From Mobula hypostoma (taxonomy: Eukaryota), in NCBI RefSeq assembly GCF_963921235.1, contig NC_086126.1, positions 18,476,001 to 18,540,000 on the forward strand: a stretch of DNA of 64,000 nt, given 5' to 3'. A program made the position numbers and the translations under genes. The first letter of the stretch is position 1. The number at the start of each line of letters is the position of its first letter. A model generated the notes under the pieces. It was not told the DNA's origin and made no database searches. It saw only the letters and a list, made by a program, of their open reading frames with translations. Positions 4,447 through 49,624 of this stretch are shown in pieces.

Positions 4447-4695
<249 letters not shown>

Positions 4696-4840
4696 AGACA
4701 AGTTTACTGACAAAACAAACCGTCTGTCTGTCTGTCTGTATCTTGTTTTACGGCGGTTGACATCCAGCTTAATGGTGCATTACCGCCACCCTCTGCTCCA
4801 GAATGTGCACTAGACATACATTCTAAATCCCTTCACCCAA

Positions 4841-4841
<1 letters not shown>

Positions 4842-4870
<29 letters not shown>
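4842..4870 (+). repeat. (CA)n microsatellite in the LINE 3' UTR
   Basis: Run of about 14 CA units. Confidence 0.95.
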
Positions 4871-4874
<4 letters not shown>

Positions 4875-5316
4875 CTACACTTCACCCTCCCATCTTTGAC
4901 CATCCTAGTATCCTATTCCTGTTTATTCGTCATATTCTATAAAAAAAACCCTGTACTCCTTAAAAATGCTAAAAATACCCAGACTTGTGCTCTCTCACCC
5001 ATGCCCAGCAACCCTTTTAATGTGAATTCCTGCATCTCCAACTCCCTTAATTTATTTCTCATCATCTCTGTATCCCATACTTCCTGCAACACAAAACTAC
5101 ATGTTCTACTGACTCCTCTTCCTGACATTCCTCACACAATCCTGTCTGGTGTTTCCCTAGCATTTTCAATGTTTTGTTTAATGCACAATGCCCCAGTCTT
5201 AACCTAGTCCACACAATTTCCTCTCTTCTGTTTCCATTACCTACCCTAGTAACTGCAACACTCTTTTGTATTTGATATAAATGCCTCCCTTTCCCCTCCC
5301 TGTCCCATCTTTCTTG

Positions 5317-8300
5317 TCACATTCGGTTGACTTTTTCCCAGATTACACACTTAACCTCTGCTTTACTGATACTAATGTGCATTTCCACATTTTCTTTCTT
5401 TAACACCCTCTTTGCCAACTCATCCACCCTCTCACTCCCCTTCACCCCTACATGTGCTGGAACCCATAGAAATTTTACCTGACCTCCCTGATTTGCAATT
5501 CTTGTAACTAACTGAAGGACTTCATAAAGTACATCTTGCCGACTGTTTGTGTGAAAAGACCTTAAACTTGCTAGAACTGAGGATGAATCTGAACATATCA
5601 ATGCTTTGGCTTGTCTGGCTTTCTGCACCCATTGCAACACAACCAACACTGCCAGCATCTCCACTGTAAACACCCCTAACTTATTAGATGTTCTTCTGCT
5701 GATTCCAATTTCTTTTGCTGGTATTACCACCCCAAACCCTATCACTCCTGTTTCAGGTTCCTTCTCACCATCCGTATAAATGTGAGTATAATCACTATAC
5801 TTTTCCATCACATGGCAGTTAAATGCATTTACCAAATCTGTTTTATATCTTTCTTTCCTTTTCACCTCTCACAAATGCCAATCTATGTCAGGCCATACAA
5901 GCTTCCATGGAGCTACAACCGGATAAACTACTGAAGGACTTATCCTCAGATCAAATACTCCACATTCTTTCACGATATCATTCCCTACCCGACTAAAGGT
6001 ATCCCTCTGAACCCTCCCATTTTCCCAGCACTCCTGCAACACTCCTTTAGTAGGGTGAGAATCATTGTGCCCCTGCAAGTTAGCCCAGTAGTTTGCCATC
6101 ATTTGCATCCTTCTTAGTTCCAAAGGCATTATTCCCATTTCTACCTGTAGGGCTGACACTGGTGACGTTTTAAAAGCCCCACTGCACACTCTCAAGGCCT
6201 GAGCCTGAATCACATCCAGTTTCCTTATAAGAGACCTAGCTGCTGATCCATATACTATATTTCCATAATCCAATACAGATCTTACTAAAGCCACATACAT
6301 TCTCTTCAAAGCTGAACAACTTGCTCCCCATTCCCTACCAGTCAAACATCTTATCACATTTATTACTTTTTTACATTTCTCCTCAACTTTCCTGATATGG
6401 TCTGCCCATGTTAATCGTGAATCAAATATAACTGCCAGAAATTTAAATGATGCAACCCTTTCTAATTCAACCCCATACATCCTTAACTTCTTCCCTACTT
6501 CAACCCTTTTCCTGGTAAAAACTACAGTTTGAGTTTTCTCTACTGAAAATCTACATCCTCAATCATAACCCCACTCCACCACTTCATCAATTGCTTCTTG
6601 TAGTTTCCTGATTATATAATCCATGTTCCTGCCTCTCTTCCAGAAGGCCCCATCATCCGCAAACAGTGACCTACCTTTATCCACTGGTACCTTTGTGAAG
6701 ACATCATTGATCATAATCATGAAAATTAATGGGCTAATCACACTACCTTGAGGTGTGCCATTTTCCACTATGTACTGTTTTGATAATTCTGATCCAATCC
6801 GAACTTGAATTTTTCTACCAAACAAAATATCTTTAATCCAGTTGAAAACTCTCCCACCAACCCCCATCTTGTACAGTTTAATTAATAATCCTTCCTTCCA
6901 CATCATATCATAGGCTTTTTCAATGTCAAAGAACACTGCCACTACTGATTCTCTGTTTGCCTGGGCCTTCCTTATTTCAGTCTCTAACATAATCACTGAG
7001 TCCATGGAATTCCTTCCCTTTCTAAAACCACTCTGATAACTTGCCAGCATTCCCCTTTTCTCAAGCTCATATGATAACCTTTCTGTTATCATCCTTTCCA
7101 TTATCTTACATATACTTGATGTTAATGCAATTGGTCTGTAGCTAGTGGGTGTTGACAGATCCTTGCCAGGCTTCCTTATTGGAATTACTACTGCTTCTTT
7201 CCATGCACTTGGTAATCTTCCCTCCTCCCACACTCTGTTATAAAAATGCAGCAACTTCAAGAGCACTCCTTCTCCTAGATTTTTTAGCATCACAGAGCAT
7301 ATCAGATCTTTCCCTGGGGAGGTTGGTCTCGATCTCTTTATTGCTCTCACCATTTCTGCTAATGTAAATGGATCATCAATTATATCATCTGTTCCTTCCC
7401 TCCTGCTTAACACACCCTGGTGTTGGCTCATTATTCTTTCCCTTCTTCTTCTCCCTTCTTCAGACAAATTTTCTGAACTGTGTATCAGTACAAATGACTT
7501 GGCCATAACCTCAGCCTTATCCCTACTGGGGACTGCAGTTTCCTCCTCAGATATCATTACTGGATATTCCCATTCCCTTCTATCTCCTTCCATCCTCTTA
7601 ATCATTCCCCATCTCTCCCCCACAGGTGTTGTTCTTCCTATCTTGTCGCAAAAACTCCTCCAACTTGCCCTTTTAGCTTGACGCATAGTTCTTCTCACCA
7701 CTGCCTGTGCTTTCTTATATTGAACCAAATGCTGCATATTATGGGTTCTTTTAACTAGCCTGAATGCTCTATTTCTGTTTTTTACAGCCTGACAACATTC
7801 CTCTGTCCACCATGGTACCAGTTTTCTATTCATCCTATTTTTACTCCTAGGTATAGATCCTTCTGCTGCCATGATAATTACTGAAGTCACCTGACTGTTT
7901 AATTCATCTACATTTCCAGAAATATCAATCTTTATCAACCCTTCTTCACTCAACTTCCGGAACTTACCCCAATCAGCTTTTTCAAACATCCACTTTGGGG
8001 TTCCGCCACCTGGTCTTACTTCAACTCTTTCACCCACTGAACACAAAACTGGGTAGTGATCACTGCCTACTGTTGAAGCAGTCCAAACTCCCCAGTTACT
8101 AATGCCAGCCAAGGTATTAGACACTAACGTAATATCTAACACTGACTCAGTTCCTGTTGTTATATCTATCCTTGTGCCGCTACCATTATTCATACACACC
8201 AAATCCCTTTCTTCCATCAAATCTTCAATTTCCTTTCCATTTGGATCTGTAATCTGATCCCCCCATATTGTGCTATGAGCATTGAAATCTGCACACCACA

Positions 8301-8703
8301 CTACTTTACATCTCTTTTGTCCTTGTATCTTTAATAGGCTGTCCAAATCCAACCTTTTACATGGATTGTAGTAGTTAATTATAACCACTCCCTCCCCTCT
8401 CTCCCACACTTCCACCACTATGTATTCCTGATCATCTCCTTTTTCCAGTACCCTATGTGGTATACCCTGCTTGATTAACATAGCACAACCCCCTCCTCCC
8501 CCTAGATTTCTATCTTTCCTTATCATTGTATACCCATATACCACAAAGTCTAAAGTTGGTTTAAACCAAGTTTCCTGAATACACACTACATCCAGTTTTA
8601 CAACCATTTCTTTAATAAAGTGCTTGAATTCCTGGCTATTGGCCAGTAAGCTCCTTGCATTCAATTGTAAAAGAATCACCATAATTAGTATTAACCAACA
8701 CAT
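5317..8703 (-). pseudogene. ORF2 (APE endonuclease, reverse transcriptase, RNase H) of the I/Nimb LINE, split by in-frame stops
   Basis: Pieces 6559-8703, 5869-6480 and 5317-5865 share one frame. LQLNARSL, IQETW, DFNAH, SDHYP; YRPIALTS, FFDIEKAYD, GTPQGSVISP, LFADD; RNase H YTDG...EMLAV...CSDS...WVPAHVGVKGSERVD. Confidence 0.9.
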
Positions 8704-9832
8704 GACACTTCCTGGCTTGACTGATTACTGAGGTTCTCCCTCACTTCCTCCCATGTCAATCCTACTAACCCTAAATGGTTTACTGCTGCTTTTACCACCA
8801 GCTGAATTTTGTCACTTTTTGACTTTACCTCAGCCGTACTATTAATCACTCCTGCAATGAATGTTACTAGAGCCTTTTTGTCTACATAAATCCTGTCATT
8901 TGTTCTTTGTTGCATCTCTCGTATCCCTATTGCTCCCTCTTCATTAGGAGGATTATTCTGTTCTCTTGACATTCTTACAGCTTCTGCATAAGTGATCTTT
9001 CTTTTCACTCATATTTCTTGAATTTTAGTCTCCCGTCTCACAACCTCACACCCACTATATGCAACTTTATGAGCTCCTCCACAATTGCAGCATTTTGGTT
9101 GAACTCCTGTTCCGCACTTTCCATATTCATGATCACCCCCACATCTAGCACATCTCCTCTGCCTTTTACAGTTTTTAGCCACGTGTCCAAACCTTTGACA
9201 ATTATAGCACCTCAGTGGCTTTGGCACATACACCCTTACTGGGTAACTCATGAAACCCAGGAACACCTTCCTTGGCACTCTTTCTTCTTCAAATTCAATC
9301 AATACTGATTCACTTTCCTTTTTCACTCCCTCCTTTGTTTTCAGTCTTTGAACATTCATTACTTTCCCTCTTTTGATATTCCTCTTTATCTCCTCCATAT
9401 TTATACTCATTGGTATCCCCGTGATCACTCCTTTACAACCACTGTTTTGTGCATTCAAGTGTATTCCACCTTGCATTTTTCTATCTCTTTTAGCTTGAGT
9501 GCTTTCTCAAGTTGTTCCTCATTCGCACATCTTACCAATAAGTTGCCATCATTAAGGACTTTTGCAAATACTATTTCCCCTACCTTATTTGTCAGAGTTG
9601 TTGTTAGCACAAACGGGTTAATTTTCTTCATATGTCCCTGAGCCTTCTCATTAAACCTAATTATGACAACACCGCCTCTCTGAGCTTGTTCATCTTCCTC
9701 ACTTTCAGAGCTTTCTCCACTATCATTTCTTATTCTTTTATTCCCTTTGTCTTGGTTTTTATTCATCCGACCCCTCACTACCTCCTCATTCCCTTTATTT
9801 CTCCCTTCACAATAGGCTCTTTTTACAGCCAC
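8691..9832 (-). pseudogene. ORF1 (gag-like nucleic-acid-binding protein) of the I/Nimb LINE, disrupted
   Basis: Three pieces (9455-9832, 9009-9476, 8691-9008). Knuckles CYNCQRFGHVAKNC, CARCGGDHEYGKC, CCNCGGAHKVAYSGC. Confidence 0.88.
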
Positions 9833-9854
9833 TCACGGCTTCATTAAAAGAGTT
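9815..9854 (+). terminator. Displaced, imperfect histone 3' stem-loop plus HDE belonging to the H2B fragment at 4546-4695
   Basis: GGCTCTTTTTACAGCC-ACTCA-CGGCTTCATT-AAAAGAGTT parallels the H2B-A 3' end GGCTCTTTTAAGAGCC-ACTCA-CGATTTCACT-GAGAGAGCTG. Confidence 0.75.
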
Positions 9855-10334
9855 ATTTTCTGTTGATGAGCTCATTCAGAATCTTACCCCCGTTAATCAG
9901 AACTTGCTGTCCGCTGCTCAGTATAATCCCGATTTCTCTGTTAATTCCTGCCAACGGCACAAGACACGGAATCGTTACACACCCGTTTCCCCGTCGCTTC
10001 CTCTCGGTTATCATATTTCTCTGACGTGGACGCTAATTGTTGTTTCTGGTTCAATTACCCGTGGGTTCGTTAAGCTTTGTCCCATTTTGGTTACTTCTCT
10101 TAACCCCATTCCAACGCGAGAGCTGAACATTGTCACGGGTCGTTCAGAGTATTTGTTAAAGCTCCACTTTCTGACGGGTGACCCGTTGGTAAACTGATTT
10201 GAGTTTACACAATGACCGACCGCGAATAGCAGCTGAGAATCAGTTTTATTCCAATCGTTTATCAACTGAAAGATATCGGTGAACTAATGTCCCAGACACC
10301 ATCGCAATATTAACTACACTTTGTTTAAGTGTGT

Positions 10335-10600
10335 CGGAGTCCAGTAACGGGGGTAAAGAGCCGACAAACAAACCTGTTGTGGTTTAATTTCAGCAACAAA
10401 GGCTTTTTTGGCGGTGTTTTGCAAATTTCAGTCTATTTCGGCGGTTAGACGGCATTTTTCGCGCTTCTACCGTTGCTGTCTCTTGATTGGTGAATAAGGC
10501 AGCTCTGTGATTGGAATATTTGCTCTTTCCAATCAGATCAGGCACTGTTTCACCAATCATAAACGCCCCACTACATTCCGCATCTCCCGCCCCGCCTGTA
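10335..10600 (+). promoter_or_regulatory. Orphan H2A-type histone promoter with no downstream CDS
   Basis: Colinear with 19735-19975 (CAGTAACGGGG, TTTTTTGGCGG, CGCGCTTCTACC, CTCTTGATTGGTGA). Multiple CCAAT/ATTGG boxes and a GC box. Confidence 0.72.
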
Positions 10601-10614
10601 TCATAGGGCGATTT

Positions 10615-12600
10615 GCAGAAGCCTGATTCCTAATGGTCAAAACTTCAAGTTTATTTCTGATTTATCAAATCTATGTGATGTTATATGTATCAGGAAACCT
10701 GATTGCTATCGCATTTAAGTTCTTCCTTCCAGTGTTATATTGTAATTAAGCGTGATAGATTAGTTGGTAGAGGAGGTGGTGGTGCAAGTTTTTTAAAGAG
10801 AGGGAGAGGGCATAGAGTTGTGGATGTAAATGAAATGTATGGGGCATTTGAAGACACATTTGATTCCACAGGTAGGTGCAATAAAGCGGTATATTATTAT
10901 AACGTCGACTGGACCTCTTCCGAGAGATGCTGCCTGGCCTGCTGCGTTCACCAGCAACTTTTATGCGTGTTGCTTGAAATTCCAGCATCTGTAGATTTCC
11001 TCGTGTTTGTGTGTTGTTATAATCATTATGGAAAGCTTCCGATTGATTTGCTGGAGAGTATATGTAGCTCTAGCTCACTAAGGGTTGTATGGTGTGGGGA
11101 TTTTAACACATAGTTAGTTCACTGTGGGGTTGTTCTCAGATTGGTGATATTTTGTTTATAGAAGAGTTTCAGATCCTGTTAGTCTTTATAGAAGAGTTTC
11201 AGATCCTGTTAGTCTTTATAGAAGAGTTTCAGATCCTGTTGGTCTTTATAGAAGAGTTTCAGATCCTGTTGGTCTTTATAGAAGAGTTTCAGATCCTGTT
11301 AGTCTTTATAGAAGAGTTTCAGATCCTGTTAGTCTTTATAGAAGAGTTTCAGATCCTGTTGGTCTTTATAGAAGAGTTTCAGATCCTGTTAGTCTTTATA
11401 GAAGAGTTTCAGATCCTGTTAGTCTTTATAGAAGAGTTTCAGATCCTGTTAGTCTTTATAGAAGAGTTTCAGATATTTCATATCCTGTGGTGGGAGAGGT
11501 ACGAAATTTAATGTTCATAATAGTTCTGAAAATGCTGTAAATTTAACTTTAGTTTTGAACATTGGAGTGAGTAGTGGGATGTCATGGGAGATGAAGCATT
11601 GGGGAGTGATCATTTTCCTATGTTTATAAGCTTGGGTTTGGATTTATATAGGGGACATGAGGCCACTTTTAGGAGGTGGAACTCTGGTAAAGCATATTGG
11701 GAGAAGTTTGAATGTTTCATGTGCTGAGCGTCTGTCTGGGCTGAATGGTGAGAATGATGTGGATTCTGCAAAGAAACATTATTCATCAAATAGTGGTGGC
11801 AGAGATTCAATTTAAAAAGTGCATTAGTGGGAGAAAAGCTGTACCATGGTGGACGGAGGAGTGTGCAGAGGCAGTTACTGAGAGAAACGTGGCATTTCTG
11901 AAAGTTAAGAAGTATCACTCTCCGCCTGATCATATTAAGTGTAACAGGTCACAGGCCATGGTGAGGAAAGTAATGAAGCTTGTGAAAAAGATTTACTAGA
12001 GGTCATATTGTGAAAGTATTGGAAGGACTATTAAACTTGAAGATGTTTGGGGAATGACTAAGAAAATGGGGGCGTAGGATTCATAGGGTTCCGAATATTG
12101 ATTAAAGAAGGTAATACAATTGTTCCTGAAAGAGAGACGGTTGAGTCCTGGCTCGGTCATTTGCTGCAATTCATAATCAAAATAGGTAGAGAGACTAAAC
12201 AATGTAGTGATAAGGTTTTACAAAATACCTTAATGTGTTGGAAACCAGCTGTAGCAATGATAGTATTAGTGATGTAGAGTTTCTTTGTGTGAATTTAAGA
12301 AAGTTATTTATAGTACAGGTCAGACGGCTCCAGGAAAGGATGATACATGTTATTGCATGTTTTAACATATGGTCAACAACTCTTTAGAGATAATATTACA
12401 TTTCTGAATTATAATTCAGGCCATCTTCCCTCCTCATGGAAAATGGCAATTCTAGTGTCGATTCTAAAACCTGGGAAACCCCTGTTGGATCCTCCTAGAT
12501 ATAGACCAATATCACTGACGTCCCATTTGTGTAAACTGACAGAATGTATGGTAATAGTGTGGTTGAATTATATTCTGGAAAAGGGAGGTGATGCGCTGTT
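10615..12600 (+). mobile_element. Old decayed I/Nimb-like LINE ORF2 fragment (endonuclease to start of RT)
   Basis: KRDRLVGRGGGG, VVWCGDFN, VPWWTEEC, PSSWKMAILVSILKPGK, YRPISLTSHLCKL; homologous to the ORF2 at 6559-8703. Confidence 0.8.
11155..11474 (+). repeat. 30-bp minisatellite, about 10.7 copies
   Basis: Unit TTTATAGAAGAGTTTCAGATCCTGTT(A/G)GTC, head to tail with no spacers. Confidence 0.97.
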
Positions 12601-18773: not shown

Positions 18774-19148
18774 ATGCCTGAGACAGCGAAACCCGCTCCG
18801 AAGAAGGGCGCCAAGAAAGCTCTGCCCAAACCAGCGGGCAAGGCAGGGAAGAAGCGCAAGAGGCTGAGGAAGGAGAGTTACTCCATCTACATCTACAAAG
18901 TGATGAAGCAGGTTCACCCCGACACCGGCATCTCCTCCAAGGCCATGTGCATCATGAACTCATTTGTCAGCGATATCTTCGAGCGCATCGGGGGCGAGGC
19001 TTCCCGCCTGGCCCATTACAACAAGCGGTCAACCATCACCTCACGGGAGATCCAGACCGCCGTGCGCCTGCTGCTGCCCGGGGAGCTGGCCAAGCACGCC
19101 GTGTCCGAAGGGACAAAGGCGGTGACCAAGTACACCAGCTCCAAGTAA
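18774..19148 (+). CDS. H2B: Histone H2B (copy A, 124 aa)
   Basis: [15 protein letters not shown]...[26 protein letters not shown]...KYTSSK; intronless with a downstream stem-loop. Confidence 0.97.
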
Positions 19149-19179
19149 AGCTCCCCAGGGCGATGATCGAAAACACAAC

Positions 19180-19220
19180 GGCTCTTTTAAGAGCCACTCA
19201 CGATTTCACTGAGAGAGCTG
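19180..19220 (+). terminator. Histone 3' stem-loop plus HDE (H2B-A)
   Basis: GGCTCTTTTAAGAGCC 19180-19195, ACTCA, GAGAGAGCTG 19211-19220. Confidence 0.95.
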
Positions 19221-19894
19221 TACCAGCATTTAGGCAATACATGGCGCATATTTTATGTGTGGTGATTTAAGAGCGAAAGAGCGGTTGGAATATCTGGTTC
19301 ATCTTCCCCGTATAATTCCGGTGTTTATCATTCCTAAAACGGAATTGTTACCTCCCCATCCCCATCAGTCCGTCCCTGCCGGTATACATGTCGAGCGGAG
19401 GACTGCTGCCATTACTGTTTTAGCTGTGGGTTCAGGAGTTTATTGGTTACAGTTAGGTAACTTCTCTGAATCTCATTTCAATGCGAGGCCGGAACGACGA
19501 CACGGTTCTTTCATAGAACAACTTTTCTTTTTAAATTGCAGACTAGACGCTGGGGACAGTTTGAGAAGAGCCGTTTGTCCATAACCTGATAACGTTTACA
19601 CAATCACCGGCACCGGGCAGAAGCTGAGTGTCAGATTTACTCGGTTCCTTTACGAATTTAAAGATGCAGTATTAGAGAATTGAGTTCCCAGACACTCCAA
19701 TATCAACTACATTTGCATTAAATGTGTCCGATTTCAGTAACGGGGAAATGCGAAGACCCAGTCGTCAAACAGATCAGCAGTGATTTAATTTCAGATTAAA
19801 TTTGAACAATAGTTTTTTTTTGGCGGGCTTTTTCCATTTTCCAGTGCACTTTGGGGAGGAGACGGTTACTTTCCGCGCTTCTACCTTTACGGGC

Positions 19895-20009
19895 TCTTGA
19901 TTGGTGATTAAGACAGTTCGTCGATTGGGCCATTTCTTTTCACCAATGAAAACAAGCAGCATTAAACTAATCACAAGCATTAGTTTGCATTTTCAAAGAA
20001 GGTATAAAA
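19895..20009 (+). promoter_or_regulatory. H2A promoter (CCAAT boxes, octamer-like element, TATA)
   Basis: Two GATTGG, CCAAT, GTTTGCAT 19983-19990, TATAAAA 20003-20009. Confidence 0.75.
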
Positions 20010-45950: not shown

Positions 45951-48350
45951 AGACCTCCCACAGTCTGTCTCCCACAGACCTACTAAAGCACGCAATACAA
46001 ACAGAGCTGCTTTGTGAGAGTTTCTGCTGATTGTGACCCTGCTGGCATTCGACGGCGGTAAACTGAGTCAGAAATGCCATTGAACCTCAAGAGAATGTGA
46101 TCAGGCTTTCTTGTTGCAGATTGACACTGCGGTATTCTTGCAGTGTGAAGGCTTTTACAATAAAATGGCATGAGGCATTTTCTGTTTCAGGAAAACCATA
46201 ACAACTCATTTATTGTCCTCCAAATACAGAAACATAAAGCACAGTTTAAAAAAAACTTCACATACTTGCATCATAACAGCAGTCCAGCTTCTAAAAGAGA
46301 AACACAACAGAATGTCAGTGATCATTAATTACGCACATTTCCAGCCATGACATTACCCTACAGTGACCCCACCCCCCACTGAATCCTCTTACTGCTCCCC
46401 CTCTGTGATCTTTAGAGCAGTTTACTTCCTTTTAGTGACACTTGCAGGATGATACAGAGAGTTCTCTCGTGTGTTAGTGCTCCTAAGGGTGCTGCCATTT
46501 ACTGTGGAGTTTCTTCCAACATTTTACCTGTAAAACTCCTCGCACTTGTCCAGATTAAAATCCATTTCCTCCATTTCTCCATCCATGATTCCAATTGATC
46601 TATATCCACTTCTGTCCATTTAAAAACTTTCCTCACCACCCACAACTACACCAACATTCAAGTCATCAGCAATCTGATCAGCCCATGTGTGTTTTGATCT
46701 GATCAGGCAGAGGTCCCATCACTGATCACTGTGGACATACTGGTTGCATATCTACAGTCAAAATCATTCTCAGTTCCATCAGCCCGAATGTCGCTCCACG
46801 ATACACACCATTCAAACCCTCCCATGCAGAGACTCGAGGAAAGTGACACATTTATCACAAGACCAGAGTTGGATTCAATGGTCTGGACTTGTTGCTCTGG
46901 ATGCTCTGCTCCAAAGTCCATTCAGATTAGTACAATGTAACCAGATACATCATCCCTGAGATACCGATGTACAGCATTGTGTCACAAACAAGAGAAAATC
47001 TGCAGTTGCTGGAAATCCAAGCAACACACACAAAACACTGAACAAACTCAGTGGGTCAGGCAGCATCTATAGAAAAAAAAGTACAGCCAATGATTTGGGC
47101 CAAAACCCTTCGGCAGGACTTAAGGAGAAAATCTGAGGAGTAGATTTAAAAGGTGGAGAAGGGGAGAGAGAAAATAAGGTGAGTGTGAAAGCTGTAGGGG
47201 GCTGGGAAGTTGATTAGTGAAAGAGACAGGAGGCCATGGAAGAAAGAAAAGGGGGGAGGAACACCAGAGGGAGATGGTGGGTGGGTAAGATGATGGGAAA
47301 TGGTGAAGGGGAGGGGGGCAGTGGGAGGCATTACCAGAAATGCGAGAGTTCGATGTTCATGCCGTCAGGTTGGAAGCTACCCATAAGGTGTTGTTCCTCC
47401 AGCAAATGTGTGGCCACATCGCATTGTATGATATTGTTTAAAAAGCTAAAAAGAATTCAATTGTGAGGATGAATCTGAAAGAACTTATATACACGTACAC
47501 TGCATGAGAGACTGGGAGAGACACAGTGCCAAGTATCAACTCTCACACTGTGCCAGAGACTGAAGAGTACAGAATGAACCCTGTACGTAATGTACAGACA
47601 TTACGTACTTTAACAAACCCGAACAACGCTCCTCCCCACCTCAAGACAGCACCACTTTGATCAATTTACACTGCAATGGACTGTCTTGAGACTCGTTCAA
47701 ATTCTCTGCAACACACATCAAAGTTGCTGGTGAACGCAGCAGGCCAGGCAGCATCTCTAGGTCCAGATCCTTCGTCAGGACTAACTGCTAACTGCTCTTC
47801 TCTTTTTACAATTCTGTACAGCAACTTTAGTTCTTGTAAGCGCTGTATCGACGATACTATGTGTTTATGATGCTGCTGCAGTAAATTTATCTTTCTCCTG
47901 GTCCATTTGACCTTCGGTCTCCTGCTGCCCTGTTTCATCACATAAACGTCTCATATTATCGAGTGCGTGTTTGTCTCATTCCACCTGCTTTTCTAGCAGA
48001 TATGACGGGCCGAATGGCCGAATACTGCCTCTGTAGTTGGTCCATTTTGTACTTTAGATTTCCTTCCTGCGGAATTAACCGGCAGCGGCAACTCACCAGA
48101 TCAGCGACAGTTCCCAGTCCACGGTGTTACCCAGAAAGAACACTGGGTAGTGCAGAACGAGTTCTGATTGGTTGAACGAATTCCTTTAGCTATCCAATCA
48201 ACTTATCTCACTGCATGAACGTTACTTCAAATAGCCAATGAAAATCCTCGGCATCCCATCCCTCATTTGCAAACACCTCTGGGCGCTGCCTATTTAATTC
48301 GTGCTCCGGGAGGGATTTGCTTATTTCTGGTTCTGAAGCGGTCAGCTGAA

Positions 48351-48724
48351 ATGCCGGATCCAGCGAAACCCGCTCCGAAGAAGGGCGCCAAGAAAGCTCT
48401 GCCCAAACCAGCGGGCAAGGCAGGGAAGAAGCGCAAGAGGCTGAGGAAGGAGATTACTCCATCTACATCTACAAAGTGATGAAGCAGGTTCACCCCGACA
48501 CCGGCATCTCCTCCAAGGCCATGAGCATCATGAACTCATTCGTCAACGATATCTTCGAGCGCATCGGGGGCGAGGCTTCCCGCCTGGCCCATTACAACAA
48601 GCGTTCAACCATCACCTCCCGGGAGATCCAGACCGCCGTGCGCCTGCTGCTGCCCGGGGAGCTGGCCAAGCACGCCGTGTCCGAAGGGACAAAGGCGGTG
48701 ACCAAGTACACCAGCTCCAAATAA
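48351..48724 (+). pseudogene. H2B: Histone H2B copy B, frameshifted
   Basis: GAGAGTTAC in copy A is GAGATTAC at about 48453 (1-bp deletion). Stem-loop is mutated to GGCTCTTTTATGAGCC (48756-48771). Confidence 0.9.
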
Positions 48725-49292
48725 AGCTCCCCAGTGAGATGATCGAAAACACAACGGCTCTTTTATGAGCCACTCACGATTTCACTGAGAGAGTTGTACC
48801 AGCATTTAGGCAATACATGGCGCACGTTTTATGTCTGGTGACTTTTACAAGAGCTAATGTGCGGTTGGAATATCCGCTTCATTTCCCCCCTATAATCCTG
48901 GTGTTTAACATTCCTCCCACTCCCGTTGCTGTTTTAGCTGTGGGTTGATGAGTTTATTAGTTAGTTAGGTAACTTCTTTGAATCTCATTTTAATTCGAGG
49001 CCGGAACGACTTCACGGTTCTTTCATAGAACAGCATTTTTTTAAATTGCAGACTAGCCGCTGGTCACAGTTTGAGAAGAGACGTTTGTCCATAACCTGAT
49101 AACGTTTACACAATGACCGGCACTGGGCAGAAGCTGAGTGTCAGTTTTACTCGGTTCCTTTACGAGTTGAAAGAAATTAGAAATTTGAGTTCCCAGACAC
49201 TCCATTATCAACTACGCTTGCATTAAATGTGCCTGGTTTCAGTAACGGGGGAAATACGAAGACCCCAGTCATCAAACAGATCAGCAATGATT

Positions 49293-49390: not shown

Positions 49391-49624
49391 TCAGCAATGA
49401 TTTAATTTCGGATTCAATTTAAACAATAGTTTTTTTTTGGCGGGCTTTTTCCATTTTCCAGTGCACTTCGGGGAGGAGACGGTTACTTTCCGCACTTCTA
49501 CCTTTACGGGCTCTTGATTGGTGATTAAAACAGTTCGTCGATTGGGCCATTTCTTTTCACCAATGAAAACAAGCAGCATTAAACCAATCACAAGCATTAG
49601 TTTGCATTCTCAAAGAAGGTATAA

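Follow-up and report, generated by a model that had tools for sequence, protein, structure and literature searches.

A 5'-truncated I-group LINE between a histone H2B fragment and its 3' stem-loop in Mobula hypostoma

Results

The stretch of DNA analysed here is 64,000 nucleotides (nt) of Mobula hypostoma contig NC_086126.1 (assembly GCF_963921235.1, positions 18,476,001 to 18,540,000 of the forward strand), and is referred to below as the window, in whose own numbering all coordinates are given. At one of its histone H2B pseudogenes, a long interspersed nuclear element (LINE) on the minus strand (4723-9814) lies between the end of the H2B 3' untranslated region (UTR) and the histone 3' stem-loop. 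An earlier note, made from the letters of the window, had described a minus-strand LINE of about 5 kb at this stem-loop, and both Pfam domain searches and a direct reading of the junctions confirmed it. The element is about 5.09 kb long and dead, is assigned below to the I group (I/Nimb-like) on its domain content, and is truncated at its 5' end by about 200 nt. A second copy of the LINE was not found in the 64-kb window.

To the left of the LINE, the plus strand carries an H2B pseudogene fragment (4546-4696) made up of the last approximately 44 codons and a TGA stop (4694-4696), as identified by direct reading and by BLAST to the H2B paralogs at 18999-19150 and 48575-48726, which are parts of genes at about 18.8-19.15 kb and 48.3-48.7 kb. 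The fragment is followed by 26 nt of H2B 3' UTR (4697-4722), which, in a gapless alignment of the rejoined flanks to the H2B paralogs, runs to the 5' foot of the stem-loop and ends in ...CAAAACAAACC(G) at 4721/4722. The 3' UTR stops where the stem-loop should begin and the tail of the LINE starts there, just as the earlier note had reported; this tail, (CAGA)4 in the sense of the LINE and (TCTG)4T on the plus strand, occupies 4723-4739. The G at 4722 is ambiguous, as it can be read as a base of the target, as a 1-bp target-site duplication (TSD) copy of G9815, or as the last base of the tail (the final C of CAGA-C in the sense of the LINE).

The H2B fragment is without the 5' two-thirds of the gene. 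Homology to H2B starts abruptly at 4546, where the break adjoins a (CT)7 run (4531-4545), and the missing part was not found anywhere in the 4.5 kb upstream. The break lies 177 nt from the LINE, on its tail side, and is most simply regarded as a separate event. Candidate causes of the loss are a deletion and the arrival of a further element that had a CT tail.

To the right of the LINE, the plus strand from 9815 reads GGCTCTTTTTACAGCCACTCACGG..., followed by AAAAGAG...CTGT. The first 16 nt, GGCTCT TTTT ACAGCC (9815-9830), are a decayed histone 3' stem-loop, located using Rfam, a pattern scan, and folding. Over 9815-9834, GGCTCTTTTTACAGCCACTC and the intact stem-loop region of H2B-A (19180-19199) disagree at 2 of 20 positions, in agreement with the 18 matches that had been counted earlier. 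The hairpin itself is changed at one stem pair and one loop base, and its minimum free energy fold is not the canonical hairpin of a 6-bp stem and a 4-nt loop, which agrees with pseudogene status. The Rfam Histone3 model (RF00032) matched 9810-9854 at 24 bits (E = 2e-4 when 501 nt were searched); the broken stem pair keeps this match under the gathering score of 34. A scan for the 18-mer stem-loop pattern with up to 3 mismatches retrieved nine sites in the window, against 0.14 expected, and the site at 9815 is one of the nine. Downstream of the hairpin, a purine-rich element similar to the histone downstream element (HDE), AAAAGAG...CTGT (9846-9863, plus strand), has GAGAGAGCTGT as its aligned counterpart in the intact H2B genes. 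About 390 nt past the hairpin, a downstream spacer with a CCAAT-box promoter region (10203-10562, plus strand) is paralogous to the spacer below H2B-A, with 68% identity to 19594-19976 in colinear order; the same region is 70-71% identical to 49104-49254 and 49433-49593, again at a colinear offset. These alignments uphold the description, in the earlier note, of an HDE and a normal spacer beyond the right junction. The score of the 9815 stem-loop falls short of the Rfam threshold, and its context is that of a histone hairpin, with a histone coding sequence ahead of it and an HDE and the paralogous spacer behind; it is a decayed member of RF00032 by descent.

The second H2B gene of the window (48350-48790) is also a pseudogene, in which a 1-nt deletion near 48453 leaves open reading frames (ORFs) of 70 and 82 amino acids (aa). 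Its stem-loop, GGCTCTTTTATGAGCC, has a 5-bp stem and lies under the Rfam gathering score. The spacer downstream of the LINE-bearing pseudogene contains a tandem array (11155-11474) with a 60-bp period, the copies of which are 97-100% identical.

To rebuild the empty site, 4694-4721 was joined to 9815-9905 and aligned to both other H2B 3' ends. The rebuilt site reads TGA..CAAAACAAACC followed directly by GGCTCTTTT, the paralogs read TGATCGAAAACACAAC followed by GGCTCTTTT, and no gap was introduced across the joint. The LINE has the last unpaired base of the 3' UTR on one side and, on the other, the G that opens the stem, with zero loss of target sequence. The TSD amounts to at most 1 bp (G4722/G9815), and a visible TSD is thus lacking, as noted before. 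Two other origins of the arrangement were considered and rejected. A 3' transduction of the H2B fragment is out, as the left and right flanks rejoin as one continuous H2B 3' end. A template switch or chimeric retrocopy (U6/L1-like) is out because the histone part at the 5' end of the LINE extends into the HDE and spacer, neither of which is present in mature histone mRNA; this histone part is also antisense to the LINE.

Both LINE ORFs lie on the minus strand. ORF2 (5065-8703) encodes an apurinic/apyrimidinic endonuclease (APE), a reverse transcriptase (RT), and an RNase H in a single frame throughout, and retrieved the Pfam families Exo_endo_phos_2 (1.4e-18), RVT_1 (3.9e-29), and RNase_H (2.5e-12). 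The ORF1 remnant (8691-9814) contains a CCHC knuckle, with a match to zf-CCHC (2.7e-5) in the segment 9009-9476. Members of the I group have RNase H in common (PMC4640811), and on the combination of APE, RT, and RNase H with a CCHC knuckle we would assign the LINE to this group (I, Nimb, Ingi, Loa, R1, Tad1, and others); the narrower label "I/Nimb" is that of the earlier note. Both ORFs are damaged. ORF2 has in-frame stops near 6480-6559 and at 5866-5868 (3 stops in the frame of 1213 codons) and a frameshift near 5065, and comparison to an intact relative places a single frameshift of ORF1 near 9440-9467 and a single in-frame stop at 9009-9011.

The nearest relatives that could be reached, which share 77-84% nt identity with the LINE, lie in contigs from Logan, ENA, and NCBI and come from other hosts (contigs are cited here by numbers beginning with L). 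Among them is a full-length relative, L011:4098-9140, with 77.5% nt identity over 5 kb. Word-based protein searches with ORF2 (714 aa), the N-terminal part of ORF1 (125 aa), and RNase H (182 aa) retrieved no relative above 82% identity (range 62-82%), an exact look-up of the window's ORF1 piece gave no match, and a degenerate pattern of the conserved 3' hairpin described next gave no match in metagenome contigs.

This hairpin, GGCGGT...ACCGCC (4752-4787, minus strand), lies at the end of the LINE 3' UTR, and its sequence is kept in all relatives. The form GGCGGTAATGCACC...CAACCGCC ahead of the tail is common to the ray LINE and to carp-like and ENA relatives (L011:9090-9140 and the 3' ends of L024, L026, and L027). 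The predicted fold has an energy of -15.4 kcal/mol (z = -0.7), which by itself is not significant. The hairpin probably serves as the 3' recognition element for the RT.

The place at which LINE sequence ends on the right was judged from individual relatives in public contigs rather than from a family consensus. BLAST homology to L001 begins at window position 9809, and a MAFFT alignment with L001, L011, L012, and L022 has 71-79% identity up to 9814 and 50-55% above it, over 56 nt and with large forced gaps. Homology thus stops at 9809-9814, and the last LINE base of the window copy lies at 9813-9814. At the protein level, related ORF1 products found with the 125-aa open frame align from CEGRNKGNEE...RGRMNKN onward, and in tblastn an intact ORF1 of 435 aa aligns to the window only from its residue 56 onward. 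The relatives' ORF1 has about 45-50 extra N-terminal residues, MAA(T/S)SAG...W(A/P)EMD, at the place where the window reads VAVKRA, and contains no match to VAVKRA. Full-length relatives are 5.32 kb long, with a 5' UTR of about 45 nt preceding ATGGCGGCG. From the relatives' approximately 50 additional ORF1 codons and short 5' UTR it follows that the window copy lacks about 200 nt at its 5' end, its ORF1 beginning at about codon 50 of the 435-aa ORF1 of the relatives.

The earlier note had read 9815-9834 both as ORF1 codons and as the stem-loop, and had proposed annealing to the stem-loop through microhomology as the way in which the cDNA was resolved. Neither part was sustained. With homology to five relatives ending at 9809-9814, the sequence from 9815 onward, as judged by these alignments, reads as host hairpin, HDE, and spacer only. 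The minus-strand frame is open through the hairpin from a GTG at 9832; because this amounts to six stop-free codons in host sequence, it has no weight as coding evidence, and the open frame VAVKRA across the hairpin is due to chance. The microhomology between LINE and target is no more than 1-2 nt (the relatives' native sequence being GA(C/T) TA(C/T)), an overlap at chance level, so annealing to the stem-loop is unsupported. The earlier note had also named an outcome that would have spoken against its own reading, namely that sequence past 9835 aligns to the LINE; it aligns to the H2B 3' spacer.

The converse reading would make the 20-mer at 9815-9834 native 5' sequence of the LINE that resembles the hairpin by chance, in which case the H2B 3' end would be deleted rather than split. 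The frame that is open through the 20-mer would suit this reading, as would an ungapped comparison to L012 of the 20 nt that lie above the junction, in which a hand count gave 9 of 20 matches against 5 expected. The relatives nevertheless differ in sequence there, and the window sequence, besides matching the histone hairpin at 18 of the 20 positions, continues with ACTCACG, the HDE, and 360 nt of colinear spacer that has its homologue downstream of H2B-A. We give this reading practically no credence, as it is refuted by the spacer homology and by the gapless rebuilt empty site. If 9815 onward is host sequence, full-length copies would not be expected to carry GAGTGGCTGTAAAAAGAGCC natively upstream of TATTGTGAAGGG; what is expected upstream of TATTGTGAAGGG in such copies is ORF1 codons similar to ...GAAATGGA(C/T), not a hairpin.

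We compared this site to those of the related insertions. The L011 and L022 elements have (GAA)n tails, lie in unrelated target DNA, and are bounded by TSDs of 12-13 bp, which read (ga)ACTGTATGCAG in L011 and ACTATCAAAGAT in L022 (the latter also in L023, the corresponding locus in a second assembly). Three further 3' flanks (L024, L026, and L027) are all unrelated, with (GAA)n-type tails at the equivalent place, and L001 provides a 5' flank of 1.1 kb. No Histone3 match was detected near the six independent related insertions (E <= 0.1 in L011 and L001; E <= 1 in the other scan), where the flank covered is the 5' side alone for L001 and mainly the 3' side for L024, L026, and L027. Within the window itself, the other eight stem-loops are uninterrupted, such that one of nine carries a LINE.

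These sites bear directly on the suggestion, made in the earlier note, of a histone-3'-end-directed family, in which the LINE machinery would recognise the stem-loop as DNA or RNA and nick at its foot, the cDNA then being resolved by annealing. The insertion is indeed exact to the base at the hairpin foot, and such a family would be new, as PMC4640811 reports no histone-directed LINE. However, the presumed homology between LINE and hairpin is non-existent, given that LINE homology ends at 9809-9814; none of the six independent related insertions (0/6) has a histone hairpin in its available flank, and two of these relatives have normal TSDs in unrelated DNA; only the one stem-loop of the window's nine is occupied; and the copy sits in a pseudogene. 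We therefore regard a histone-directed family as very improbable rather than formally refuted. A narrower version, in which a (CAGA)n-tailed I-group family of the ray prefers the foot of the histone hairpin, for example via palindromic DNA, and this copy is one of several, strikes us as equally hard to credit.

We would like to note some further features of the relatives. L011 (GCA_977066305.1) lies between two 5S rRNA or 5S rRNA-like sequences, L011:2531-2647 (57 bits) and L011:10718-10834 (43 bits), and may sit in a 5S array or between short interspersed nuclear elements derived from 5S rRNA. In the intact relatives of contigs L012-L018, common sequence starts only about 5 nt ahead of the ORF1 ATG, and the 40-240 nt upstream differ among the contigs, which reflects either variable 5' UTRs or contigs that end in flanking DNA. 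ORF2 of the window copy (5065-8703) is 74% identical in protein to the intact L015:1364-5143, a Logan contig with cluster neighbours from Cyprinus carpio, and this pair has a synonymous divergence (dS) of 0.89, a nonsynonymous divergence (dN) of 0.15, and a 4-fold-site p-distance of 0.405, which is not saturated. Such a divergence is rather close for the split between cartilaginous and ray-finned fishes, and on these sequence distances horizontal transfer may be entertained as a possibility rather than a demonstrated event. Additionally, sequencing runs of four organisms contain 23-43% of sampled words of 9300-10300, a measure of word sharing only.

Discussion

In our assessment, this is very probably an ordinary one-off event in which an I-group LINE, truncated at its 5' end, inserted by a known mechanism into an H2B copy that was in decay. 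The junctions show that reverse transcription was primed from a nick in the plus strand, at the 3'-OH after ...CAAAACAAACC(G), the last unpaired base ahead of the hairpin; the earlier note had placed the start of target-primed reverse transcription at the foot of the stem-loop, and our analysis supports that placement. The cDNA stopped about 200 nt short of the 5' end of the RNA, in ORF1 at about codon 50, and the far side was joined with a duplication of 0-1 bp and no loss of target. The second-strand break may have fallen nearly opposite the first nick, and end-joining with little or no microhomology may have sealed the 5' end. That the LINE stands at the hairpin foot would then be a coincidence and not a property of the family. 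Among L1 elements, short TSDs are found only with 5'-truncated copies, which were judged to be endonuclease-dependent (Kojima 2010, PMC2912911). With its complete tail, its 5' truncation, and its short TSD, the window copy fits this picture of 5'-truncated L1 (PMC2912911).

Some observations weigh against such an ordinary insertion. The view that the position is a coincidence draws on relatives found in other hosts, at 77-84% nt identity, and on a single window of 64 kb. TSDs of 12-13 bp are made by these relatives, and a duplication of 0-1 bp is atypical for the group. Moreover, a base-exact match to a landmark is improbable for random insertion, the landmark comprising roughly 9 sites with about 3 positions each in 64 kb; this improbability is tempered because the site was picked post hoc among many windows.

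The near absence of a TSD also raises an endonuclease-independent origin, in which LINE cDNA would have patched a pre-existing double-strand break at the hairpin foot, a break to which the palindrome, or intense transcription across the histone cluster, perhaps contributed. The event would still be a one-off. No TSD is seen although the relatives make TSDs of 12-13 bp, and the nick site, AAACC^GGCTC, is unlike any of the relatives' junctions. Endonuclease-independent L1 insertions are often without the 3' end of the element. In contrast, the window copy has a complete 3' end, with its (CAGA)4 tail and 3' hairpin, and no target deletion accompanies it. Such events have been described for L1 and are associated with target deletions (Sen et al. 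2007, PMC1920257). The L1 copies that most resemble the present one, which are 5'-truncated with short TSDs, were judged endonuclease-dependent (PMC2912911). We consider the repair of a pre-existing break to be possible but unlikely.

If histone targeting were true, the I/Nimb clades would gain their first target-specific lineage, and histone genes would for the first time have a LINE directed to them. Most reported target-specific families of transposable elements fall within the early-branched, Tx1, and R1 groups of retrotransposons that lack long terminal repeats (non-LTR); histone genes go unmentioned there (PMC4640811), and no histone-directed retrotransposon was found in the literature searched. 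Similar to the target-specific LINEs of the R1 clade and of the Tx1 clade (e.g., Keno in U2 genes), the window copy is APE-bearing and occupies a precise position of a multicopy gene. Those LINEs, however, have many independent copies at one target nucleotide, whereas the present case is a single copy, in a pseudogene, with relatives scattered in unrelated DNA.

Compared to the fish I/Nimb LINEs, the window copy has the same CCHC-bearing ORF1, the same three ORF2 domains (APE, RT, and RNase H), a tail of short repeats, and the conserved 3' hairpin, and its ORF2 has 62-77% aa identity to teleost proteins. Its tail unit is CAGA, in contrast to the GAA or GAG of the relatives that could be reached. 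With endonuclease-independent L1 insertions (PMC1920257), it shares the lack of a TSD and a junction unlike those of its relatives, but it differs from them in having a complete tail and in being free of deletion or rearrangement.

The type of insertion is already known, and the use of the finding lies in the annotation of the histone cluster and of the LINE family, for which it provides a clean example of a 5'-truncated LINE without a TSD in a dead histone gene. The closest counterparts are the 5'-truncated L1 copies with short or no TSDs (PMC2912911), in which the 3' tail is likewise kept, the 5' end is lost, the TSD is 0-1 bp, and there is little or no microhomology. Unlike these, the element described here is an I-group LINE with RNase H and a microsatellite tail (that of L1 being poly(A)), it resides in a cartilaginous fish, and its truncation removes about 200 nt of about 5.3 kb.

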